From positions 481,369 through 531,802 of the forward strand of contig NW_005434623.1 in NCBI RefSeq assembly GCF_000315625.1: a DNA stretch of 50,434 nucleotides. Direction: 5' to 3'. Shown piece after piece: positions 7,045 to 44,414 of the stretch. Under the pieces are notes generated by a model. That model did not search any database, was not told the DNA's origin, and saw nothing but the letters and a program-made list of their open reading frames with translations. This stretch comes from Guillardia theta CCMP2712. Taxonomy: Eukaryota > Protista > Cryptophyta. Every line of letters begins with the position of its first letter. The stretch's first letter is position 1. A program made the position numbers and the translations under genes.

Positions 7045-10000
7045 ATCGCTCACGCTCCCTTGCCTCCTGGTCGCACTCATTCTCGTGCTCCCTGTTGGAG
7101 CTCGGTGCTGCTCCTACAGTGAGATAGGGCAACTGCCTGCACCTGCTTGTCGATCCACGTGTGATGTCTCTCTCTTCCTTCGGCGTCTGCAAGTATCACG
7201 CATTCGAGTGGCAGAACTGCGCGGGGGTCAGGAAGTGAGTGGCGAGAAGAGGAGGCAGGTAGAGAGTAGACCCGTCAAGGACAGGAAGAGCCATGCTTCC
7301 GTCAAGAAACCTCTCAAGAACCTTCGATTGCAAGGTGACACATACCTGCACATCACTGCTTGCTGCATGAGGATGACATTGCCATGACAGCTCTGTTTCA
7401 CGCCGCACGCAATGGCAACGCAACAGCGCAGTATGAGCTGGGGATGCTTCAGATCCAGTGGCTGGAGAGGACCAGGCCTGAGAGTCGCTCCATCGTCTGT
7501 GCGAGAGCCGTCAAGTGGGTTCAACGAGCAGCGGAGGGAGGCTGCATGGCGGCAGAGGAGACCTTGGCTTTGTGGACACTAGAAGGAAGCCATGGAGTGC
7601 CGAAGAATCAACGTGCGAGCACCTCGTGCTGTCTTGCTTCTCTTACCCTGACTGTGAGCAGGGAAAGGATTTGAGCATATGCTCGCGTTGGCTCACAGGG
7701 GTTCCTTTCTCTGCATGCGGAGGGCTGGGTACTGCCTGGACGAGGTGATTCAAGTTCTTTCCTTCCCCGGGTGACCATGGCAGGGCGTCGGCGTCGATCG
7801 AAACCGAACGGAGGGCATCCGGTGGTACCGACGATCTGCCGAAGAGGGAGACGACCCCGCCGCCATGTACAACCTCGGCGTCTGCTACTACTATGGGCAT
7901 GGAGTCCCCAAGAACGTCTCACAGGCACTCCTGCTCGCTCTTAGCGCGTGTGACTGATGGAACAGGCGTGCGAATGGCTGAGAAAGGCAGCGCTGTGGGG
8001 CAGAGACGAGTGGGTGCAGGTGAAGGAGGGAGCGGGAGAGCTGAGAGAGAAGAAACTGAGAGTGAAGGAAGAAACTGAGAGAGAAGGAAGAAAGAAAGCG
8101 ATAGGGAGAATTGAGACAGCAAAAGACCAGCTGGTGCACGATAGCAACAATGACGAGGGCAAGGAGAAGGTGGCAAAGGAAGTAGCAACAGGAGCAGCAG
8201 AAGCAAGAGGAGGAGGTAGTAGTGGCGGTGGTGGTAACGGCAGATCAGGTGAACGAATACGCGAGTCAATTGAAGTCTCTTGGGTACGCGAAGGCTCAGT
8301 TCATGCTCGGCATATGCTACCTGAATGGAGTAAGTGACTTGTCAAGGGGGGGGAGGGAGTTTAAGAGCTCTAGGAGTGACTGAGAGGCAGGAAGGAGTTG
8401 AAGTGGACCACGAGACGGGAATTGAGCTGCTTTCATATGCGGGCGAGCAGAACCACACGGACTCGCTGCATCTGCTAGGAACGTGCTTCTATGAGGTGAG
8501 GGCGATGGAACAGCAGCGATAGCCTCCTCTTCTCTCTCCTGTTCCCTTCCTGATGGAGGAGCAAGGGCCTCGCTCTCGACGAACCCGACTACCTTCAAGC
8601 CTTCACGTGCTGGAGCAAGGCCGCGAGCCTCGGCTGGTTCCTGACACTCCATCCCCATGCTGAGCTGATGAGGATGCAGCCTCAAGTCCAAGCACAGGAT
8701 AGCTATGTGCTACAGCGAAGGCAAAGGAGTCAAGCAAAACGAAAGGAAATGTGCAGCTCTGCTACTAGAGAACGCAGGGTGCGGTTGGAATGAGTCGCTC
8801 AAGGTGAAGGCAGGAGGAGGAGGTGGTGGTGGTGGTGGTGAATGAGCTGATGCCCAGTAGCTTGCAGGCTTGTGCTACATCGAAGCCAAGGGTGTGAAGA
8901 GAGATGAAGAGAAAGGGCTAGACCTCTACATGCAAGCGACTGGAGTGAGCATGGCGCAGGTTTTGGACCTAGCAGAGAGTGACGGCGGTGACGTCGAGTG
9001 TGTGCAGGCTCAGTATGAGATTGGACGGAGGTTCCTCAAGGCAGAAGGATGGCTCAAGACGCCAAACGAAGAGCGAGCTGTGTCATGGCTGGCACGAGCA
9101 GCAGACGAGCAGCACCTGGAGGCCATGGTTCTTCTTGCTCCTCTCCTCATGGACGGTAGCAAGGGAGGTGCAGCGTTAGGCTTGAGGTGCTTCAAGTGCA
9201 GCTCCTCTCCTCACGCCCTCTGACGCTGAGGCAGGAACGTGTCTCGAGGAGTGAGCTTGATAGCTCATGCTGCTGAGAGCGGGCATGCAGGGGCTCAGCT
9301 GGCCTTGGGAGACTATTACCACAAGGGCTTCCATCGCTTCCACAAGGATCTCAACCTGGTGAATGTAGTCTTGTCTCAAAGTGTTTCGCTTCACCTTGCT
9401 CTACCTCGACCCACATCTCCTTGCTGTCCTCCTCCTCTCCAACATCTCACCTCACTTGTACTCCTCTCTCGCTCCCTCTCAAGCCTTCCTACTTTCTCAG
9501 CCTAGCTAAAGTCCAGCTGGCAGGCGACCACGTGGTGGTCGAGGGCAGCGAGTCAAGGGAACGAGGAGGCGAAAGTTGGTCTCGTTGCTGACAGTGCGGG
9601 AGCTGACGGGACGCAGACGAGGCTGGGGAAGCTCTATGCCCGCAAAGGCAACGTGAGTGGCGTTGACCAGACCATTCGGCTGGAAGAGGAGGAAGAGGAC
9701 GAGTACGTCAAGCTTGCCGCGGAGAACGGAGACCCCAAGGCAAGGAAGGAGAGTGACTTGACTCGCTGACGGGTCTTCACGACAGGCTCAGGTCGTGTTT
9801 GCTCGACGGCTACTTGGCAGCCAAGACATGCGAGAAAAGGGGGAGGCGGTGCTGCTGCTACAACGGGCAGCTCTGACAGGAGAAGCTGAAGCGATGTACG
9901 AGTACGGTCGCCTCCACCTCGATGGGAACCTGGTGAGGCCACAACAGATGCATGTTTGCCTATCGTTAACCATGAGGAAGATGCATAGGAGCGCGGAGAC

Positions 10001-10538
10001 AGCATACCGATGGTTGCGGGGAGCCGCTAAGAAAGGGAACACAGATGCGATGTTTGCAGTTTCTCGCATGCTGATGGAGGGGGAGGGGGTGGAGAAGCGA
10101 GAGAGGAGAGGACGTCAGGTATACGTGCAGCTCCTCCTCCCTCTACTCACTTCCTGCAGTGGCTCACAATGGCTGCTAAACGCGGCCATGCCCGCGCCAT
10201 GTTCAACCTCCACCTCCTCCTGCGTGGTGATGGCAGAGGCGACCCACAAGAACTTCGAGAGGTGCCTGAGAGAGGAAGAGGGGGGGGGGGGCAGGGATGG
10301 AAGGATCGGATGACTGACTATGAGACCACCACAGGCGAACGTCTGGCTCGAGCGAGCAGCGAGTGCTGGGCATCCCAAGGCACAGCTCTCTCTTGCTGTC
10401 AACTGGATGCAACAGGAGAACAACAGCACGGGGGGAACGCAAAGCGAGAGGATGCAGGACGCCATCAAGCTCCTTCAGAGCGCAGCAGCAAGCGGATATC
10501 AGCCTGCTCGAGCTCTTCTCATGCGAGCAAGACATTAA
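7040..10538 (+). CDS. Sel1-like repeat (SLR) protein with probable signal peptide, many exons
   Basis: N-terminus MRSLTLPCLLVALILVLPVGA. Repeated Sel1 motifs such as AARNGNATAQYELG, AAESGHAGAQLALGDYYHKG, AAENGDPKAQ, AAKKGNTDAMFAV, AASAGHPKAQLSLA. Stop TAA at 10536-10538. Confidence 0.85.
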
Positions 10539-10552
10539 CGTCATGGAACAGC

Positions 10553-11046
10553 ATCTACTTCTGCCATCCCTCCGTCAGCTCCCCCAGCATGCTTCTCTCC
10601 TCTCACCTTGTCTTTCAGCTCTGCCTCTCTAGCCGCCTGCCGCCGTATCGAGCACCTCTGCCCATCGACCCGGCAACGCCTGAGCAGCCGTCATCACCTC
10701 CAGCCCCTCGAGCTCAGACCCTCACCCGGAAGCCTCGCAGGGCTCGTGAGGAGGATACCTGAGATGTCTCAACTCTCATCCGCTCCTCCTCTCCCTCCGC
10801 CCCCTCACCGGCAGTTGGTGCTCGGGCTACCTGCTGCGGTGCATGGGGGCGGTTGCCTCTTGCTCATAGCAACGCGCCCATGAGGCACGACAGGAGGAGA
10901 CCGGACGGGGAGCCGAGCGGGAGAGAAACCTGAAGCCTTGAGAGATAGGAAGGGAGGAGTCAGTGGAACCATCAAAAGTGAGACTGGTTCACCAGTGTCA
11001 TCGCCAGGGTGAAGCATACAATCACCTTCACAATCAAGTTGTTCAT
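10553..11046 (-). CDS. Possible small multi-exon hypothetical protein
   Basis: GT-AG bounded segments can be joined to ...YPPHEPCEASGRCRVDGQRCSIRRQAAREAELKDKK*. No known domain. Confidence 0.25.
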
Positions 11047-11586
11047 GCTCGCCCTCGTTGTCTGCTGTATCACTCAGTGAAGCAACTCTGACCTGATCTC
11101 ACGTGTTTCCCTCCTCTTCCTCTCTGCCTTTGCAAACACACACAAGCCCTCCTTGCTCCCTTCCATCTTTCCTTGCTCAACCCTGCTGAGCTTCTATGCT
11201 CCTTGAATGTCCTTCATGTCGCCTAGTTGTTGGCTAGGGCACGGTGTTGCCCTGCAGCATATGGCCGGGAGCCTCCGAGCGCGCCCCGCGCACGGGCTCA
11301 GCGGCCGGGCGGGAGTCTCAGCAGCGGCCGACCGGTCCGGGCCCCGGCGGAGGCCCAGTACACGGCTTCCCGCGTGGGCTGGCAGTGCAGGGGCTGGGGT
11401 CAGTCACGTTGCAACCAGACCGCCGCCGGGACCCTCAACCGGGCCACCCAGCGCGAGTCGACAGTGCCAGTGCGGACCCCGGGCCGATAACAATGGGCCG
11501 GAGACCAGGTTTATCACTGAGGGGAATAAATCGGCCACCTCGACAAATGGCCGACAGGGCAGGAAGAAGAAGACCCGGCATACAAG

Positions 11587-12240
11587 TTGCCATCCGAGGG
11601 CCACCTGCTAGAGTTTGCGAGGTTCAAGCGGGAGCTTCCGCATAGTCGGGGAGGGGACGAGTTCACGCCCTCTGAGGGTCTACACCCCGCTGTTTACTAT
11701 ACGGCTATCGCTCGCTTCCTCGCTTGGTACTCTGACCAGCCCATGTCCCGGACCTTGCCCTCTCCTCATAGCCTGGACGTTCACTGCTCGAGATCTCTCC
11801 GTGCCCAGAAGCATCCTCTGGCGACCTTCTTCGTTGAGGCGCACGACTTCGTTCATAATGCTGGAGCGATCCTCTACCGTCGTGTCAAGGCTCCTGCACC
11901 GGCTGCAGATGGCGCGGCGATCCCACCTGCCCCGGCTGCTGTGCCTGATGACGCAGGACGCCCCCCGGCATCTGTGGTACACATCCCTGGTTTGCGCGCT
12001 CTCGTCGACTCGTCTCATGAGCACTTCATTCCTCCCCCTGCGCAGCGAAATGTGACCCCTCTTGTCATGCGCGTCTTCCCTCGCCATGTGCATGCTCGCG
12101 CTGCGCTGACCGATCAGCAGCGTGATATCCTCACCTTGCACAGCCGCAGGACACACTCGCTCAAGTCGCAGGATAGGGTCTTGCAGTCTACCATCTTCGC
12201 TCATTTTCCTGAGCGAGACCTGAGCCACTCTCCCCACCAC
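11587..12240 (+). pseudogene. Retrotransposon ORF fragment, probable post-RT thumb/linker region
   Basis: ELPHSRGGDEFTPSEGLHPAVYYTAIARF resembles the LP..GG.G.....AY motif that follows the RT domain in RLE-clade LINEs. Truncated at an ACCAC microhomology junction with the next copy. Confidence 0.55.
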
Positions 12241-12935
12241 TGACTCGGCTACCGCTGACTCGGAGGCTAGCGAGGAGGACTACCTCGAGCGGTACCGTGT
12301 TCCTGTGTCCAGCCTCCCTCCGTCCGCTGCCCCAGGCGGACCCCCGGGCAGCGCCGGCTCCTTGTCGGCGGCTGCCCTTTCTCCGTCCGCGGCCGCCCGC
12401 TTTGTGGCGGCAGCGGACGTCTCGACTGACAGTGGTCAGTCGGCTGCCTCCGGGTATCGCGTCTAAGGGATTTTCTTCCTCCTGCATGCTCCTGCTGCTT
12501 GTTGCTTGATTGCTTGACCCTTAGGCTGCTTGTCTGCGCGGCTTCGCGCTTGGGCTGGCGATGCCGCGTCTGGGTGCCAGCAGTGCTGGTTCTTTCCGGG
12601 CATGTGTTTTGTGTGTGTTTGTGCAGCTTCTCGCTGTGGACTGTGTGCCTGGAGGTTCAGCTTGTTCCTGCTTTGTTTTGCTTGAGGCACTTTTTACCCT
12701 CTGCCAGTAAAGCCTATACATCTGCGACGTTGGGTGCCTCCCCACCCGGGCAACGCCGGCTCCTTGTCGGCGGCTGCCCTTTCTCCGTCCGCGGCCGCCC
12801 GCTTTGTGGCGGCAGCGGACGTCTCGACTGACAGTGGTCAGTCGGCTGCCTCCGGGTATCGCGTCTAAGGGATGTTCTTCCTCCTGCATGCTCCTGCTGC
12901 TTGTTGCTTGATTGCTTGACCCTTAGGCTGCTTGT

Positions 12936-14402
12936 CTTCTCCATGGCATGCCGATCTGCCAGTGTCCGACGGAATGTGATGGATGTCAGCGCGAGCTCGA
13001 TCCCTCCGTTGCTGCACATCATCTCCAGACCTGCAAACGCCGATCCTCCAAGCTTCCCACGGCGCATGACAACCTTACTCGTACGATTCGGTCGATGCTG
13101 AACGAAGCTGGTCTTCAGAGTGTCATCGATACAGTGGGGGATCCTCGTTCTCGACGGCAGGTACCCTCCCATCCTCATGGCCGCAAGATGAAGGGCGATA
13201 TCCACATCCCTGGAATCCGCGATCGAGGGTCCGAGCAGTACGAGGGCTTGATGGCGGACGTGACGTTGGTCCACCCTTACATCGGTAGCTCTGCCGACCT
13301 GACCAAGTGGGGGGAGGTCAACCTCGACGCCCTCCATGCTGCAGCGTCTGAGAAGATTCGCAAACATCGCGCTGCATATGCCATGACTACTCCTCCTCGA
13401 GCGTTCATCCCTCTTGCCATCTCGACGGACGGTACCCTGCATCCTGACACCCTCCGCTTCATCTGGTATCTCGGTCCACCCTTACATTGGTAGCTCTGCC
13501 GACCTGACCAAGTAGACCAAGTGGGGGGAGGTCAACCTCGACGCCCTCCATGTTGCAGCGTCTGAGAAGATTCGCAAACATCGCGCAGCATATGCCATGA
13601 CTACTCCTCCTCGAGCGTTCATCCCTCTTGCCATCTCGACGGACGGTACCCTGCATCCTGACACCCTCCGCTTCATCTGGTATCTCGCGGACATCATTCC
13701 TCAGCGCTCGATGCCTCTTGAGGATGCGGCGTTTGGTCGGCACTTCGTGCCTGATGACGGCCCTGCTGCTGAGGTCTTGGCTCGCAAACGCTCCGCCACC
13801 TATCAGCGCCTCACCATGCAGCTTACGCTGGAGGCGCTCTTGTCTGGTGCGAGGCGCATGACGCCCTTGCGGGCGCAAGCACTTCTCGAGCCAGAGGACA
13901 GCTCCTCCTCGGACTTTGTCGAGTCGCCCGAGGGGAGTCTTCGCCGGAGGTCTCCGACTCCGATGGGGGAAACCCTTCGAGTGGCCCCGACGATCGGCGC
14001 GGAGCTGGCGAGGCGTCTCCGTCCCTCACTGTGACGTCGGGTGCCTCCGGAGAGCTCGACACCACTGGGGTGCTTGCTGCTGGTCCGAGCTCGCCTGCTT
14101 CCTCCCCGGCATCGGTCGGGTCACGCCAGTCCTTGGGCATTGCCGCGGCGTCGCCGCCGTCACGGGCGGCTACCACTGACTTGGCTACCGCTGACTCGGA
14201 GGCTAGCGAGGAGGACTACCTCGAGCGGTACCGTGTTCATGTGTCCAGCCTCCCTCCGTCCGCTGCCCCAGGCGGACACCCGGGCAGCGCCGGCTCCTTG
14301 TCGGCGGCTGCCCTTTCTCCGTCCGCGGCCGCCCGCTTTGTGGCGGCAGCGGACGTCTCGACTGACAGTGGTCAGTCGGCTGCCTCCGGGTATCGCGTCT
14401 AA
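12936..14402 (+). pseudogene. Retrotransposon C-terminal ORF: CCHC zinc knuckle + restriction-like endonuclease + long Ser/Ala/Pro tail, disrupted
   Basis: CQC..CDGC...HHLQTC (knuckle), AHDNL (RHD/RHN motif), KGDI...DVT...EKIRKH...FIPLAISTDG (PD-(D/E)xK-type RLE). Broken by a ~205-bp duplication and a frameshift near 13930. Stop ...GYRV* at 14400-14402. Confidence 0.85.
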
Positions 14403-17400
14403 GGGATGTTATTCCTCCTGCATGCTCCTGCTGCTTGTTGCTTGATTGCTTGACCTAAGGGCTGCTTGTGCTTGAGGCACTTTTTATCTGCTGCCAGTAA
14501 ATCCTATATTGCTTGTCTGCGCGGCTTCGCGCTTGGGCTGGCGATGCCGCGTCTGGGTGCCAGCAGTGCTGGTTCTTTTCGGGCTTGTGTTTTGTGTGTG
14601 TTTGTGCAGCTTCTCGCTGTGGACTGTGTACCTGCCGGTTCAGCTTGTTCCTGCTTTGTTTTGCTTGAGGCACTTTTTATCTTCTGCCAGTAAATCCTAT
14701 AAGGAGTCTCGCGGACATCATTGCTCAGCGCTCGATGCCTCTTGAGGATGCGGCGTTTGGTCGGCACTTCGTGCCTGATGACGGCCCTGCTGCTGAGGTC
14801 TTGGCTCGCAAACGCGCCGCCACCTATCAGCGCCTCACTATGCAGCTGACGCTGGAAGCGCTCTTGTCTGGTGCGAGGCGCATGACGCCCTTGCGGGCGC
14901 AAGCACTTCTCGAGCCAGAGGACAGCTCCTCCTCGGACTTTGTCGAGTCGCCCGCGGAGTCTTCGCCGGAGGTCTCCGACTCCGATGGGGGACACCCTTC
15001 GAGTGGCGCCGACGATCGGCGCGGAGCTGGCGAGGCGTCTCCGTCCCTCACTGTGACGTCGGGTGCCTCCGGAGAGCTCGACACCACTGGAAGATATAGG
15101 ATTTACTGGCAGAAGATAAAAAGTGCCTCAAGCAAAACAAAGCAGGAACAAGCTGAACCGGCAGGTACACAGTCCACAGCGAGAAGCTGCACAATCACAC
15201 ACAAAACACAAGCCCGAAAACAACCAGCACTGCTGGCACCCAGACGCGGCAGCGCCAGCCCAAGCGCTGGGTGCTTACTGCTGGTCCGAGCTCGCCTGCT
15301 TCCTCCCCGGCATCGGTCGGGTCACGCCGGTCCTTGGGCATTGCCGCGGCGTCGCCGCCGTCACGGGCGGCTCGGCTACCGCTGACTCGGAGGCTAGCGA
15401 GGAGGACACTACAGAGGATTTACTGGCAGAAGGTAAAAAGTGCCTCAAGCAAAGGACTACCTCGAGCGGTACCGTGTTCCTGTGTCCAGCCTCCCTCCGT
15501 CCGCTGCCCCAGGCGGACCCCCGGGCAACGCCGGCTCCTTGTCGGCGGCTGCCCTTTCTCCGTCCGCGGCCGCCCGCTTTGTGGCGGCAGCGGACGTCTC
15601 GACTGACAGTGGTCAGTCGGCTGCCTCCGGGTATCGCGTCTAAGGGATGTTCTTCCTCCTGCATGCTCCTGCTGCTTGTTGCTTGATTGCCTGACCCTTC
15701 GGCTGCTTGTCTGCGCGGCTTCGCGCTTGGGCTGGCGGTGCCGCGTCTGGGTGCCAGCAGTGCTGGTTCTTTTCGGGCTATGTGTTTTGTGTGTGTTTGT
15801 GTTTAGCTTGTCCTGCTTTGTTTTGCTTGAGGACTTTTTACCTTCTGCCTTTCCTGCTTTGTTTTGCTTGAGGCACTTTTTACCTTCTGCGAGTAAATCC
15901 TATACTGAGTAAATCCACTGGCGTGACCCGACCGATGCCGGGGAGGAAGCAGGCGAGCTCGGACCAGCAGCAAGCACCCCAGTGGTGTCGAGCTCTCCGG
16001 AGGCACCTGACGTCACAGTGAGGGACGGATATAGGATTTACTGGCAGAAGATAAAAAGTGCCTCAAGCAAAACAAAGCAGGAACAAGCTGAACCGGCAGG
16101 TACACAGTCCACAGCGAGAAGCTGCACAAACACACACAAAACACAAGCCCGAAAAGAACCAGCACTGCTGGCACCCAGACGCGGCATCGCCAGCCCACGG
16201 AGACGCCTCGCCAGCTCCGCGCCGATCGTCGGCGCCACTCGACGTGTTTCCCCCATCGGAGTCGGAGACCTCCGGCGAAGACTCCCCCTCGGGCGACTCG
16301 ACAAAGTCCGAGGAGGAGCTGTCCTCTGGCTTATGCCAGTAAATCCTCGCACCCGCTCGAGAAGTGCTTGCGCCCGCAAGGGCGTCATGCGCCTGGCACC
16401 AGACAAGAGCGCCTCCAGCGTCAGCTGCATAGGGAATATAGGATTTACTGGCAGAAGGTAAAAAGTGCCTCAAGCAAAACAAAGCAGGAACAAGCTAAAC
16501 CTCCAGGCACACAGTCCACAGCGAGAAGCTGCACAAACACACACAAAACACAAGCCCGAAAAGAACCAGCACTGCTGGCACCCAGACGCGGCATCGCCAG
16601 CCCAAGCGCGAAGCCGCGCAGACAAGCAGCCTAAGGGTCAGGCAATCAAGCAACAAGCAGCAGGAGCATGCAGGAGGAAGAAAATCCCTTAGACGCGATA
16701 CCCGGAGGCAGCCGACTGACCACTGTCAGTCGAGACGTCCGCTGCCGCCACAAAGCGGGCGGCCGCGGACGGAGAAAGGGCAGCCGCCGACAAGGAGCCG
16801 GCGCTGCCCGGGGGTCCGCCAGGGGCAGCGGACGGAGGGAGGCTGGACACTGGAACACGGTACCGCTCGAGCTTGGTAGTCCTCCTCGCGGCTAGCCTCC
16901 GAGTCAGCGGTAGCCAAGTCAGTGGTAGCCGCCCGTGACGGCGGCGACGCCGCGGCAATGCCCAAGGACCGGCGTGACCCGACCGATGCCGGGGAGGAAG
17001 CAGGCGAGCTCGGACCAGCAGCAAGCACCCCAGTGGTGTCGAGCTCTCCGGAGGCACCCGACGTCACAGTGAGGGACGGAGACGCCTCGCCAGCTCCGCG
17101 CCGATCGTCGGCGCCACTCGAAGGGTGTCCCCCATCGGAGTCGGAGACCTCCGGCGAAGACTCCTCGGGCGACTCGACAAAGTCCGAGGAGGAGCTGTCA
17201 ATAGGGGGGTATAGGATTTACTGGCAGGAGGTAAGCAAAACAAAGCAGGAACAAGCTGAACCGGCAGGCACACAGTCCACAGCGAGAAGCAGAAGCTGCA
17301 TAGTGAGGCGCTGATAGGTGGCGGCGCGTTTGCGAGCCAGGACCTCAGCAGCAGGGCCGTCATCAGGCACGAAGTGCCGACCAAACGCCGCATCCTCTTG

Positions 17401-18900
17401 CTTGAGGCACTTTTTAAATCCTATTCTCAAGAGGCATCGAGCGCTGAGCAATGATGTCCGCGAGATACCAGATGAAGCGGAGGGTGTCAGGATGCAGGGT
17501 ACCGTCCGGCGAGATGGCAAGAGGGATGAACGCTCGAGGAGGAGTACCAGCCCATGTCACGGACGGTACAATGGATTTACTGGCAGAAGGTAAAAAGTGC
17601 CTCAAGCAAAACAAGCAGGAACAAGCTAAACCTCCAGGCACACAGCACACAGCGAGAAGCTGCACAAACACTCAAGCAAAACAAAGCAGGAGTCGGAGAC
17701 CTCCGGCGAAGACTCCTCCTCGGGCGGGGTACTTTACCTTCTGCGATTAAAACTTAGACCTTTGGTACTGCTGCAGCGTCGTCGCCGTCGATCACCGATG
17801 GCCGGGCCCTGTTGGAAGCAAAACAAAGAAGGAAAAAGCTAAACCTGCCATGCACACAGCGCACAGCAAGAAGCTGCACAAAAATCAAGACCAAAAGTAC
17901 ACTGGCAGGCTGGCAACTGTCACAGCGGGGCCGCGCCGAGGCCGACCGTCTCAGGCTGGTGCTTCGAGGGTGCCCCGCCGGGATGCACACGGCGGTGGCA
18001 ACGCGGCGGGTCCCGGCGAGCCTCCGACCGTCGGTGACGGCCGGGCCAGACGACAAGAGAATTTTACTCGCGGCCGGATCATCGGATCAGGGTAAGGCCC
18101 TCGGAACCTGGGAGCCGCGACGGCGAGTGCGGCACTGCCAAGCTGAACCAGACCCGGGCTACACTGCCGCTGACTGAGCCCACGCGGGAAGCCACGGTAG
18201 ACAAGCCGCAGAGAGGGGCAAGCAACGAGCACCGGCGTCACTATATCGGCACACAGCGGCAGCCGGGCCCGGTGGCAGCCCGGCTGACTGACCGCCGCCG
18301 GGGGCCCTAGTACGTCCGCCGCAGCCGCTTGTCGGAGTCACCAGTCACTGTGGCACGGTGGGCCTGGCAGAGCCGGGTCGCGGACGGAGAAAGGGCAGCC
18401 GCCGACAAGGAGCCGGCGCTGCCCGGGGGTCCGCCTGGGACGACTGACGGTCGGACAGCGGTCAGTCGGATGCCTCCGCCGCCGCCGCCGGCCGGGGTCA
18501 GTATCGCGTCTAAGAGACTGTTTCATCATGTCTCGGAGGTCCCCATCATTGTGCTCCTGCTGCTTGTTAAACCTCCTACAGACTGTTGCTTGCGGCCCTC
18601 CCTGCTTGAGTCTGCGCGGCTTCGCGCGTAGGCTCAGCGGCTGGCGGTGCCGGGCGTCTCAGTCTGCGCGGCTGACAAGACTGCCGGAGCCTCGGAGGCT
18701 CATCATGAGTCCCCCGGACCCGGCATGCGGGCCTTCCGAGTTCGGCCCGGCCTCAGTTGAGTTAAAAATCAGGTCGATAGTAGGGGTCAGCGAGGGGAAA
18801 GGGGTGGGTGGGGTAGGTGAGGGTGTGGCGGCGGAGGTATGGGCCCGAGGAAGAGCGGGCGAGGGGATGGGGGAGGGGCCGGAGGAGCAGCGGGAACGCC

Positions 18901-18974
18901 GGGAGCAGGGGGAGCAGGGGGAGCAGGGGGAGCAGGGGGAGCAGGGGGAGCAGGAGCGGGAGCAGGGGGAGCAG
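18901..18974 (+). repeat. (GGGGAGCAG)n 9-bp repeat
   Basis: Seen directly. Confidence 0.9.
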
Positions 18975-19068
18975 GAAGGTACGAGATTTCACAGTGTCTC
19001 CGTTAGAGATTCTGACAGCATGGTAGTGTTCTCTCACCTGCGAAAGCGTCGAGACTAGACATACGTAC

Positions 19069-21178
19069 ATGGCAACAACCCCAGGTCCTCCCAGACTTTA
19101 CCGCATGTTCCATTAACTATGAGTGAGGATAGATCAGTTCTTTCATGAAACTGATGGGCTTTGACCCTCAACCGCTTGAGAATGATGGTGAGTTCCGTGT
19201 AGACACATGCTCTGAGGATGAGAGTCTTGCACCTACAGGCGTTCCCGCACGCTACTTGGCAGACTTGGATGAGGATGATTTCATGCTCTTGGGGCTCTCG
19301 CAGGTGACCGTGAGATTCGCCTAGCAGTAGTTGTGTTGCCGCTAGTTCTCATTGCCCGACATTACCCTTGTCTCGCGATGTTTGAAGGCGGCAAATATTC
19401 CTTCTGCTCGGCCACTTGAAGCAAGAATGCTCGTGACATCTCTTAAGAAGTAGCCGAGCTAGAGTGTACATCCCTCTCAACCTTGGACCCTCAACCTTTT
19501 CTCCTCATTTCATCCTGCCCCCCACTCACGATCCACCAGGAACAGGCACGACTTTTGGTGTCCGACGTACAATGTCTTATTACAGGTAGGATTGGAGGGT
19601 TCAAATCGTGATTGCGTTGATGCTGGTCCAGGCGTACCGGTGGAGTTAGAGCTTGCCGATGCTCCAACTTCAGCGGCCGGTGAGCAACGCGTTGGGACGA
19701 GGGGTTGTTAAAGACACCGAGGCAGGGTCGCTTCTGTTGAATCACCTGGAAAGGGGAAGCGAGCAAGTACTGTTACGACTGTTCCATTGTCTCTTGGTTG
19801 ACTTCCTCTGTAGGATCAAATCCTTGCCGCCAAGACTTTGCCGAAAATCTGTCCAAGAGGGGAGAAGCGAGTAGTGTCAGCACTGGCGTGCAAGGTGCAG
19901 GGCATTGAGGTGTGAGTTAGACGCAGCCCTGACAAGGTCTACGGGCAGCTAGAGGGCTGCTCACCGAAGCTCTTAGTCGTCGTGATTGAAGCTTTGAGAG
20001 AGCTGGCTCCCAAGGTCTCACGCTCCGAGCTCATCCCTGCTTGTGACTATGACCCAGGGCGATTCTGGGATGATCAACAGTCTGAGCAGATACCTTTTTG
20101 TCGATGATGCGAAGGTGAGAGGTGCTTGCTATCGATGGTGGGTCGCGAATTTGGGATGTCTCAGGTGCGACGAGCGACGATTATGGCACTGCAAGGTATC
20201 ATAGAACAAGACGAGAGGAACCTCAAGTTGGCAAACATGCTGCTTGCTCACCTCGAAGACTCCGACCCTTCGGTCCGTGCTGCTGCGGTCAGGATGCAAG
20301 CTTCTGCAGCAGAGAAGAGCTGACCTGTTGACCTGTGTGCAGACTGACGCTCTCGGAAATTTCAAGAAGAACGATGAAGACATCCTGTGGGGTATCCGTC
20401 ACAAGATCGACTTCGGTCCTCCTTTTGCTCGAGCTGCTGCAGTCCGTACCCTTTCTCGCCTTGTAAATCAGCTCTGGCTCGAGAGTCCGACGACTTGACA
20501 ATGACCTGAGGTACATGAAGGAGACCAGAACTCCTTGTCCATTGTCTTCCACGCACTTCAAGACCCCGAAGAGCAGGTGATGAAGGAGGTCACTGATGGT
20601 AACAGTCTCACTAACCCGCAGGTTCGGTCGTCTGCAGTCAAGGTGATCACCGACGCGAGCCTCAGCGCTCGTGACGACGTATATGGAGACACGGAGATGT
20701 GAGACGTGGAAGTGAGATGCTGTGACAGGGAGTACGCGAGAGATTCTTGAGCCTCACGCTGCAGTACATGCTGCATCCTCTCCCTGCTGTCCGACAGTCG
20801 GCTGTGCAGGTCGAGCGTGCCTATGACCCTTCGTCCCTTGACTTTCAACTGTCAGGTTGCAAGCAAAGTGTCGCTCAAAGGGAATCAGAGGATATGTGGT
20901 CAGATGCTCTTCATGCTGCAGGTGAGGGAGAGGGGAAGGAGAGGAAAGGTTGACGGGTTCACAGGATTCAGACTGGGGGGTGAGAAGAGAGGCAGCGCTT
21001 GCCTTGTCACTGCTGGGGGATCGCACGGACGACAAAGTGATGCAGGTACAGGAGACTCAGCTTTTCCTTGTGCTGATTCGCTGAAATCCCGCAGGGCTTG
21101 CAGGCGCTCCAGGGAGATTGCGAGCGCCATGTCAGAGAGGCAGCAAGAGAAGCTTCTACACGGCTGCAAGGAACTTGA
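19069..21178 (+). CDS. HEAT-repeat protein with possible N-terminal SAM-like segment, many exons
   Basis: HEAT motifs LAHLEDSDPSVRAAA, ALQDPEEQVRSSAV, LHPLPAVRQSAV, LQGDCERHVREAA. Early exon LADLDEDDFMLLGLS is SAM-like. Stop TGA at 21176-21178. Confidence 0.72.
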
Positions 21179-39960: not shown

Positions 39961-41686
39961 TCTCCTGCTCCTGCTGCTCCTGCTCCTGCTCCTGCTGCTG
40001 CTCCTGCTGCTGCTCCTGCTCCTGCTCCTTCTCCTCTCCGTCTTTGAGTGAGTCAGACTACAGAGTCTCATGTTCGGTTCTCTTCTCTCCGCCACTGACC
40101 CCGTGGCAACTCTCGCGGTCCTCGGTCAACTTAATGGGGACCCACAGGTAGAGGGAGGGAGGCAGGGAGGGGGGGGGGTGTTGTGNNNNNNNNNNNNNNN
40201 NNNNNNNNNNNNNNNNNNNNNNNNNNNNNNNNNNNNNNNNNNNNNNNNNNNNNNNNNNNNNNNNNNNNNNNNNNNNNNNNNNNNNCATGACTGTCACTCC
40301 CAAATTCACGACGAGAAAACAGGGCAAAACTTTGGGTAAGACCAAATTAAAAAATGGAACAACAAACAAAACATAACTGGATTGCCCTTTTTTTTGGGGG
40401 GGGGGGGGGGGAGGGAGGTGGTTAGGGAGGGTTTTCTTTCTCCTTACTTGAGTTCAGCTCTACTCAATCATCTTCGGTGAGAGTGTTCTCAACGACGCTG
40501 TCGCCATTGTTCTCTTTCAGACCCTCGACAGCTTTCCGGTCAGCTCTCCTCCACTCTGTTCCCCTTTCCTACCTTCTTCTCCCTCTCCCTCTTCATCTCC
40601 CTCCCATCCTCCAACCCGTTACCATCGTCTCATCCATCTTGCAGGACGATTCTAAATTTCACGTCTCGGCCAAGTAGTTGCTCTCCCCATTTCTCCTCAC
40701 CCCTTCTCTTATCCCCGCCAGTCTTGGTGTCTCCTCCTCCTCTCCTTCTTCCTCCATCGTCCACTCCTCCTTTTACCATGTCACAGGGCAGCTTTCGGCG
40801 CTCTTGGTATGTTCCTGGGCATCAGCATCGGGTCTGTCCTGCTAGGCGCTGTGAGTCCCTGTTTCTTCCTAATCTCCACTTGCAACCATCTTATCCCCCC
40901 CCCTCCTTCCCCTCTTCTTTGTCCTCCCCTCGCCCTCCTCGTCCTACGTCTTCCTCTTCTTCGGCATCGTGCTCGTCATCGTCTCACCTCCAGCAGGTCT
41001 CGGGCTTGTGCGCTGGTTTCATCACCAAGTGGATGCTCGTCAAAGCTACTGCTCCCACTGAGGTCCCCGCCCCGCCCCTCCCCCTTCCTCCTTTCTCTCC
41101 TTCCTTCTCCCCTTCTCTTCTCCCTGCTCTTCTTCTCTGCTCTTCCTCTTCGCTCTTGGAACCTCCGACGACCCTCCTTTCCATCACCTCAAACCTGCTC
41201 CGTCAATGATCTTTCCTCATCCTCCTCCACCACCACCACCTCCTCCATCCCTTTAGCTTGGGGACGCAGGTGACGGTGATGCTCTCCATGGCTTATCTCT
41301 CCTTCATTGCCGCTGATTCTGTTGGTCTCTCCGGTCTCATGGCAGGTTCTCTCCCTCGCTCTCCCTCGCTCGCTCTCCTTCCCTCTCCCTCCCTCTCTCC
41401 TTCCCTCTCTCCCCCTCTCTCCCTCCCTCTCTCCCTCCCTCTCAATCTCCCTCTCTCCCCCTCTCTCTCTCCCTCTCTCCTTCCCTCTTAATCTCCCTCT
41501 CTCCCCCTCCCTCCCTCCCGCTTTCCTTTCCCTCTCGCTCTCCCTTGCTCTCACTCCCCTGCTCCTTCCGTCTTTCCTTGTCTCATCGTTTTCTGTCAGT
41601 TTTCTTCTCTGGTGTCGTCATGTCTCACTATGCCAAGTACAACATAAGGTGCCCTTCCTCCCCTCCTTCAACGTGTTCCTGGGATC

Positions 41687-43260: not shown

Positions 43261-44414
43261 TCCTCCTGTTCCTCATTCTTCCCGTTCTCTTTGTTCTTGC
43301 CCCATTCCCCCTCCTCCTCCCCGTCCTCCTCTCAATTCTCCACTTTTGCTTCTTCTTCCGCCTGCTCTTCTTCGTTGGCTGATTGTCTGGAAGGGGGGAG
43401 ATCGAGGCGAGGGCTCTACCGCAGACAGGCAGGACTGGAGGAGGGACTGGAGGGATCGATGCCTTCTTCCATGCACCTCCCTCATTCAGACTTGAGGTCA
43501 ACGTCCTCCTCCTGCTCCCCCTGCTCCCCCTGCTCCCCCTGCTTCTGCTCCTTCTTCTGCTCCTGCTCCTCCCCTCACTTGCTCGCAGCTCCTCGGACCT
43601 CGAACGAGAATCAGCAGCAGACAAGTCGCTGGGAGATCAGGAGCTGGTGCCAATGCCCAAGGAGGTGAGGACAGGGAGGGATGGGAGGGAGGGNNNNNNN
43701 NNNNNNNNNNNNNNNNNNNNNNNNNNNNNNNNNNNNNNNNNNNNNNNNNNNNNNNNNNNNNNNNNNNNNNNNNNNNNNNNNNNNNNNNNNNNNNNNNNNN
43801 NNNNNNNNNNNNNNNNNNNNNNNNNNNNNNNNNNNNNNNNNNNNNNNNNNNNNNNNNNNNNNNNNNNNNNNNNNNNNNNNNNNNNNNNNNNNNNNNNNNN
43901 NNNNNNNNNNNNNNNNNNNNNNNNNNNNNNNNNNNNNNNNNNNNNNNNNNNNNNNNNNNNNNNNNNNNNNNNNNNNNNNNNNNNNNNNNNNNNNNNNNNN
44001 NNNNNNNNNNNNNNNNNNNNNNNNNNNNNNNNNNNNNNNNNNNNNNNNNNNNNNNNNNNNNNNNNNNNNNNNNNNNNNNNNNNNNNNNNNNNNNNNNNNN
44101 NNNNNNNNNNNNNNNNNNNNNNNNNNNNNNNNNNNNNNNNNNNNNNNNNNNNNNNNNNNNNNNNNNNNNNNNNNNNNNNNNNNNNNNNNNNNNNNNNNNN
44201 NNNNNNNNNNNNNNNNNNNNNNNNNNNNNNNNNNNNNGTCCCTTCCCTTCTACATCTCTCCTCTTCCACCCTGTCCCCTGCGTCCCTCGCCTCCTCCCTC
44301 CCTCCCCTCCTCCCCTGCCTCCTCCCTTCCACTTTCTCCCCTCTCACTCTTGTACCAGATCGCTCGGTCGACGCTCTTCATGAGCCTCTCAATCCAGGAG
44401 CACATGGCCCTTGA
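39008..44414 (+). CDS. CPA1-family Na+/H+ exchanger (NHX/NHE-type), many exons, spans two gaps; 3' end approximate
   Basis: FFLYLVPSIL|YESGYSLNQKDFFRNF, FGSLLSATDPVATL, LYSIIFGESVLNDAVAIV, GLSGLMAVFFSGVVMSHY, WFSGLRGAIAFALS. Confidence 0.93.
40186..40285. other. Assembly gap (100 N)
   Basis: N run. Confidence 1.
41688..41761 (+). repeat. (CTG)n microsatellite in an NHX intron
   Basis: Seen directly. Confidence 0.95.
43694..44237. other. Assembly gap (544 N)
   Basis: N run. Confidence 1.

Follow-up and report, generated by a model that had tools for sequence, protein, structure and literature searches.

A 50,434-nucleotide stretch of the Guillardia theta CCMP2712 genome (contig NW_005434623.1, positions 481,369 to 531,802; hereafter the window) contains a nest in which copies of a single R2-like retrotransposon are broken up by short copies of the element's own 3′ end. 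It is one of about 95 such nests. We consider it probable (roughly 0.7) that they arise by target-primed reverse transcription (TPRT) directed to a region of the chromosome, probably centromeric chromatin, with most events aborting early. The original prediction, made from the window alone, had described an element that repeatedly writes tiny 3′ copies into itself; that observation was confirmed and generalized, its interpretation is supported, and the nests are good candidates for centromeres.

A pattern search of the window for the 17-nt terminus, allowing up to three mismatches, returned 11 matches on both strands, all within 12701-17586, compared with 0.06 expected from shuffled sequence. 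Direct reading added a twelfth site (17398-17425), a shortened variant with an internal 12-nt deletion, in line with the at least 12 termini in about 5 kb (12.7-17.6 kb) first reported. Self-comparison and tiling found no element sequence in the window outside 11245-18634, agreeing with the pattern search and with the earlier remark that none was noticed in the other ~43 kb. No assembly gap falls in the nest, the sole N runs of the window being at 40186-40285 and 43694-44237. The coordinate reference was a natural copy from another scaffold (L032, 3′ 1646 bp) rather than a consensus. Decomposition against this copy, together with direct reading, resolved the nest into collinear host copies broken up by 3′-complete fragments. 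The six inserts previously listed as splitting otherwise continuous copies were all real and carried the duplications ascribed to them, the one given as 176 bp at 15091-15266 (CTGG) now being read as 15091-15267. Self-comparison also revealed copies with 100% identity in the window, a sign of recent activity.

The same anatomy was found elsewhere in the genome. Automatic decomposition of the window and 35 other loci (~180 kb) identified 100 insertions inside copies, of which 67 were derived from the 3′ terminus. Perfect target-site duplications (TSDs), 1-14 bp long and most often 6 bp, accompanied 46 of these 67 events. Insert sizes spanned 9 bp to more than 2 kb (7-15 bp, 6 inserts; 16-30 bp, 13; 31-60 bp, 14; 61-120 bp, 10; 121-250 bp, 8; 251-1000 bp, 5; above 1 kb, 11), and 33 of the 67 were no longer than 60 bp. 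Even the smallest, at 9 bp, held 7-9 nt of the terminus and were flanked by TSDs of 4-8 bp. When twenty internal 40-mers were used as mock termini they matched 0-4 of 64 short inserts, compared with 31 of 64 for the true terminus. The 3′-anchored truncation with TSDs on which the original prediction had based its inference of TPRT is thus a general property of the nests.

Insertion sites were distributed along the whole readable element in both orientations, 30 inserts lying in the same and 37 in the opposite orientation to their host copy. No target motif was detected, the highest information content around either nick being 0.37 bit per position. The lack of a motif, the spread of sites and the use of both orientations therefore support targeting that is regional and not sequence-specific, as had been proposed from the differing insertion sites of the window. 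At the 5′ junctions, 34 of 43 clean events showed no filler, and microhomology averaged 1.7 nt. The 3′ junctions carried 0-17 extra bases (median 3) between element and TSD, and the tail following ...GTAAATCC was TATA in 45% of 149 termini and variable in the others. In four public sequencing runs the element was present at high depth relative to unique flank, with many other terminus-to-internal joints from other copies; 61 raw RNA reads were placed at ~6% sampling.

The open reading frame (ORF) at 12948-13493 of the window corresponds to the C-terminal domain of the element. Alignment of 30 relatives of this domain revealed a C..C..H..C knuckle and three invariant or nearly invariant residues, D110, D130 and K162. 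An AlphaFold (AF2) model of the domain had a predicted local distance difference test score (pLDDT) of 83.5, and when this endonuclease model was compared with the PDB using Foldseek the top seven matches were all R2 proteins (E 2.7e-5 to 3.8e-3). For the reverse transcriptase (RT), RVT_1 of Pfam was weak but significant in the family proteins P0008 (E 5e-8) and P0111, and a family RT profile searched against the PDB matched R2 proteins best (E 1.4e-7), followed by L1 ORF2p. Pfam scans of the 1511-aa relative P0111 and other long relatives returned RVT_1 only, with no apurinic/apyrimidinic (AP; exonuclease-endonuclease-phosphatase) endonuclease. The R2 proteins were reached by fold and profile searches only: Pfam gave nothing for the endonuclease ORF among the window's own ORFs, phmmer of a full-length relative against PDB sequences gave nothing, and an ESM Atlas search gave unnamed clusters only. 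The reading frame is continuous from the post-RT region into the endonuclease domain, P0111 being one 1511-aa product, at the N-terminus of which no zinc-finger or Myb motif was obvious by eye. Because fold and RT profile both match R2 first, the D/D/K and CCHC residues are kept and no AP endonuclease was detected, the element is, as judged from modelled structure and sequence comparison, an R2-like non-long-terminal-repeat (non-LTR) retrotransposon of the restriction-like endonuclease (RLE) type, with a predicted C-terminal zinc knuckle and nuclease. The RLE type assumed from the window sequence agrees with this assignment.

RT motif C reads (Y/F)(A/L)DN, not the usual ..DD, in eight of nine aligned family members, distant ones included (P0008, P0110, P0111, P0072, P0128, P0142 and P0036, and also L032:6300-7000 on the plus strand); R2 has AFADD at the aligned position. 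Since the family has evidently been active in recent times, the RT presumably works with ADN; connecting this motif with the many aborted cDNAs is no more than guesswork. In the 1577-aa metagenomic protein P0065, a distant relative of the endonuclease domain is located at the C-terminus and a ubiquitin C-terminal hydrolase (UCH) domain at the N-terminus. The contig of a 71%-identical relative (L052) stops before the terminus and is uninformative on nesting elsewhere.

Across the genome (87.1 Mb in 669 contigs) the terminus occurred 488 times at no more than one mismatch, compared with once for the reversed control. Places were taken from five listings, comprising ~240 different termini, 100 endonuclease-region sites and ~150 longer matches on ~95 contigs. 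Among the matches listed, those of each contig are confined to a single stretch no longer than 27 kb (the longest on C1, 683.9-711.0 kb); ~95 contigs carry a nest and none carries two. Exactly one nest stretch was present, among these matches, on 25 of the 26 largest contigs. At least 62 of the 101 largest carry one nest and none carries two, compared with ~25 of the 101 expected to have two or more under random scatter at the same density, as calculated from the listed places. This genome-wide map, which the original prediction had proposed as a check, accords with its centromere idea in showing at most one nest per scaffold. The listed termini are also clustered and not spread evenly, none lying away from the single nest of its contig. 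On contigs that end in telomere-type junctions the nests are ~65-720 kb distant from them and are therefore internal, and in the four largest contigs of known length the nest lies at 48-57% of the length.

The contig ends in question carry (CCCTAAA)n telomere repeats (37 junction places; for example L039, C2:1-120, and L042, C25:1-120), which are capped outward by tandem repeats of ~19-20 nt with units such as CTGCCTGAAATAACCGGCG, and the junction with the telomere repeat is always oriented toward the contig end. One telomere-type junction with one mismatch (C71:410949-410977) lies ~1 kb from a nest match (C71:409987), in the orientation opposite to that expected of the far end. Either an assembly join or an interstitial telomere repeat next to the nest could account for it.

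We propose that the element ribonucleoprotein (RNP) would reach one region per chromosome, most likely centromeric chromatin, and nick DNA there with little sequence preference, the two nicks being staggered by ~3-8 bp. The nicked bottom strand would then serve as primer for reverse transcription, which would start at the extreme 3′ end of the element RNA and would often be preceded by the addition of a few untemplated bases. The majority of attempts would end within the ~260-nt 3′ untranslated region (UTR) with only 7-250 nt copied, and the short cDNA would be joined to the upstream DNA end through 1-5 nt of microhomology. A minority of events would extend to kilobases, and occasional end-to-end template jumps may yield a double insert (16437-17290). 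Since the region already consists of copies, each new event would fall in an older copy in either orientation, giving rise to the mosaic. Under this proposal the short inserts would be aborted events of the same machinery as the long ones. The restriction to one region per scaffold is probably not encoded in the DNA sequence. Targeting may instead depend on chromatin or on a protein that tethers the RNP, most simply to centromeric chromatin, and the nest region would then be the centromere.

Several observations weigh against this proposal. On the element strand, C prevails over G in the first three bases of the TSDs (68 C versus 18 G), and recurrent sites are marginally in excess (10 pairs versus 5.4 expected, p ~0.05), so that some weak sequence preference exists. 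Long inserts are under-detected in the short 4-kb loci, and the dominance of tiny inserts is consequently overstated there; it is also present in the ungapped window itself. The ungapped tiling produced at least one long 'event' that proved spurious. For about 40 of the 101 largest contigs there is no entry among the matches listed. The telomere-junction pattern was never seen at both ends of a contig and 'one nest per chromosome' therefore rests on scaffolds, none of which was seen to run from telomere to telomere. Finally, Logan contigs of the four runs are 60-550 bp long in the repeat, too short to span the window mosaic.

Break patching, a hidden sequence code, selection alone and misassembly together account for about a quarter of the probability. 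If the nests were fragile sites, element cDNA, or RT primed at free 3′ ends, could fill spontaneous breaks without the element endonuclease. Extra bases at 3′ junctions and microhomology at 5′ junctions are indeed also typical of end-joining repair, and a third of the terminus-derived events lack a perfect TSD. However, some TSDs are only apparently missing, owing to divergence between host and reference copies (for example TCTCG at 13469/14702), and the peak at 6 bp among the 46 perfect TSDs points to a regular staggered cut. The D...D...K residues have moreover been kept intact in the family, and endonuclease-independent insertion of L1 usually leaves no TSDs and is accompanied by deletions, all of which makes break patching unlikely. 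The endonuclease might alternatively recognize a motif borne by the element itself, as R2 recognizes one in 28S rDNA. Most known RLE elements are site-specific, and such a motif could explain both the C-rich TSD starts and the few sites used more than once in independent events (for example reference positions 1007, 1053-1057 and 1375-1379). We regard it as quite improbable, given that sites occur throughout the readable element in both orientations with no position above 0.37 bit, and that the excess of recurrent sites is marginal under a null that ignores the over-representation of 3′ parts. C-rich trinucleotides are, furthermore, ubiquitous in a genome of 55% GC, yet no listed terminus lies outside a nest.

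Random integration followed by selection, with insertions occurring everywhere and surviving only in gene-free nests, is consistent with a gene-dense genome whose nests contain no other genes. Inserts of 9-60 bp should nevertheless be almost without effect on fitness in intergenic or intronic DNA. All of the ~240 listed exact termini, however, fall at the single site of their contig, and the other 43 kb of the window contains none. Selection alone would also not yield at most one nest per scaffold, and we consider this explanation very unlikely. That the nest is a product of misassembly, or of recombination among a small number of ordinary copies, is scarcely credible, even though the scaffolds derive from a Sanger-era assembly with 100-N gaps in other nests, and short-read contigs fail to bridge the repeats. 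Neither misassembly nor unequal recombination makes short host duplications flanking a 3′-anchored piece; the window nest is free of gaps, the same pattern recurs at 35 independent loci, and inserts of 9-180 bp with their flanks fit within one read of typical Sanger length.

The closest analogues of the Guillardia nests are those of Zepp (Chlorella, Coccomyxa) and ZeppL (Chlamydomonas), in which nested 5′-truncated self-insertions form one cluster per chromosome; the Guillardia count rests on contigs. Zepp and ZeppL belong to the L1 clade and have an AP endonuclease and a poly(A) tail. In contrast, the Guillardia element has a predicted C-terminal RLE, no AP endonuclease match and no poly(A), and therefore falls outside the Zepp/ZeppL group. 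It also comes from another supergroup of eukaryotes, and inserts of 9-250 bp predominate in its nests. In Coccomyxa, where each chromosome has strictly one nested cluster, the clusters are regarded as centromeres (PMC3446292). The putative centromeres of Chlamydomonas are marked by ZeppL (PMC8226300), which a preprint reports to associate with CENH3 (bioRxiv 10.1101/2025.03.28.645958). A local GC peak at the cluster is common to Zepp in Coccomyxa and the Guillardia nest, GC being 0.60-0.61 in the interval 10001-20000 of the window and 0.51-0.56 on its flanks.

With R2 and other RLE elements (R4, NeSL, CRE/SLACS, HERO and Genie) the Guillardia element shares an RT followed by a CCHC knuckle and a PD-(D/E)xK nuclease, as well as the absence of a poly(A) tail, untemplated 3′-junction bases and head-to-tail double inserts; the last fit the end-to-end template jumping known for R2 RT. 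Most R2/RLE elements cut one defined sequence, such as 28S rDNA or spliced-leader genes, and the CRE clade (CRE1/2, SLACS and CZAR) inserts in spliced-leader RNA genes. The Guillardia element instead targets its own copies. It shows no target motif, which makes it unusual within the group, and its RT motif C is ADN and not ADD.

Dictyostelium DIRS-1 is another retroelement that piles into itself at the centromere of each chromosome. The same behaviour has been described for the centromere-resident Drosophila element G2/Jockey-3 (PMC6516634). Both belong to element classes unrelated to the Guillardia element and use other integration enzymes. To our knowledge, no dominant population of micro-inserts with TSDs has been reported for either. 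Extremely 5′-truncated L1 insertions, whose structures are discussed in PMC2912911, resemble the Guillardia inserts in being 3′-anchored with variable 5′ ends and microhomology joins; the latter differ in lengths down to 9 nt, a peak below 60 nt and confinement to one region. In the literature searched we found no paper on Guillardia or cryptophyte centromeres or on the present element.

The nests provide ~95 concrete candidate centromere loci for a cryptophyte. RLE elements are usually textbook sequence-specific integrators, and an RLE element that appears to be region-targeted without a sequence code raises the question of what tethers it. The hundreds of TSD-flanked micro-inserts are also a natural record of how TPRT begins and fails, which is relevant to present attempts to employ R2-type enzymes for gene insertion. 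More tentatively, and with somewhat less than an even chance, the nests may be the CENH3 centromeres of ~90 small Guillardia chromosomes, where an R2-like RNP devoid of a DNA sequence code would read centromeric chromatin and a mostly aborting, unusual ADN RT would build and renew centromere DNA largely from TPRT scars of 9-250 nt. If true, this would be a second, independent invention of a Zepp-type centromere, by a different endonuclease class.

Components of the window nest (positions in the window; TSD, target-site duplication)
Position	Strand	Feature	Basis
11245..12233	+	Leftmost copy fragment, reaching from downstream of the RT to immediately upstream of the endonuclease domain	tblastn of family proteins P0111 and P0008; tiling
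11456-11581		Small inverted RT fragment inside the leftmost fragment	
12236..12718	+	483-bp 3′-terminal fragment, terminus variant ...AAAGCCTATA	
12745..12937	+	Internal piece of an older host copy (reference positions 1271-1463), truncated by the next copy	
12938..15905	+	1.5-kb 5′-truncated copy in four pieces (12938-13469, 14711-15090, 15269-15407, 15453-15905)	collinear pieces
13473..14701	+	1.18-kb 5′-truncated copy inside copy 12938-15905; TSD TCTCG; 5 extra bases (AGGAG) at the 3′ junction	
14470..14509	+	40-bp 3′-end insert, TSD TGCTTGT	
15091..15267	-	3′-end insert, 173 element bases plus 4 extra; TSD CTGG	
15413..15452	-	40-bp 3′-end insert, 8-bp TSD AGGAC(AC)TAC / AGGACTAC, the two TSD copies differing by 2 nt	
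15917..17546	-	Host copy in four pieces (15917-16029, 16197-16430, 17294-17397, 17426-17546)	
16030..16196	-	167-bp 3′-end insert, 100% identical to 14534-14701; TSD ACGGA	
16332..16354	+	23-bp insert: 14 nt of terminus, preceded by 2 and followed by 7 extra bases; TSD GCT	
16437..17290	-	Two head-to-tail 3′ fragments within one TSD pair, AGCTGCAT, joined by 10 extra bases	
17398..17425	+	28-bp 3′-end insert with internal 12-nt deletion, TSD CTC	
17570..17687	-	118-bp 3′-terminal fragment of an older variant, terminus ...AAATCCATT, ~89% identity	
17689..18634	.	Right nest edge: short element fragments in both orientations, several degenerate (85-98% identity)	

The leftmost fragment is in the same reading frame as the downstream domain, as judged from other copies. 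The plus-strand host copy, which carries the CCHC and restriction-like endonuclease ORF, is interrupted by three later inserts. The longest of these (13473-14701) was absent from the original list and itself contains the 40-bp insert at 14470-14509. For the insert at 15091-15267 the TSD CTGG holds if the G-run of the host was three and not four G. Four insert events interrupt the minus-strand host copy, the third of which (16437-17290) is composed of two fragments, 763 bp at 16437-17199 and 81 bp with an internal deletion at 17210-17290, and was likewise missing from the earlier list. At the window's left edge, an apparent event of 2157 bp was rejected as a spurious short ungapped match.

Internal deletions of the 3′ UTR are present in two short inserts, 12 nt at 17398-17425, where the deletion is flanked by short repeated bases, and ~17 nt at 17210-17290, a pattern suggestive of intramolecular jumping while the cDNA was being made. 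In the copy that ends at 15905, 41 bp of the 3′ UTR are present as a tandem duplication (15801-15849) directly ahead of the terminus. The first unit ends ...CTTCTGCC, without the terminus, and either slippage or a template switch in the backward direction could have produced the duplication. At 8870-10313, immediately to the left of the nest, ORFs resemble Sel1-type repeats by eye, so that ordinary ORFs appear within ~1 kb of the nest edge.

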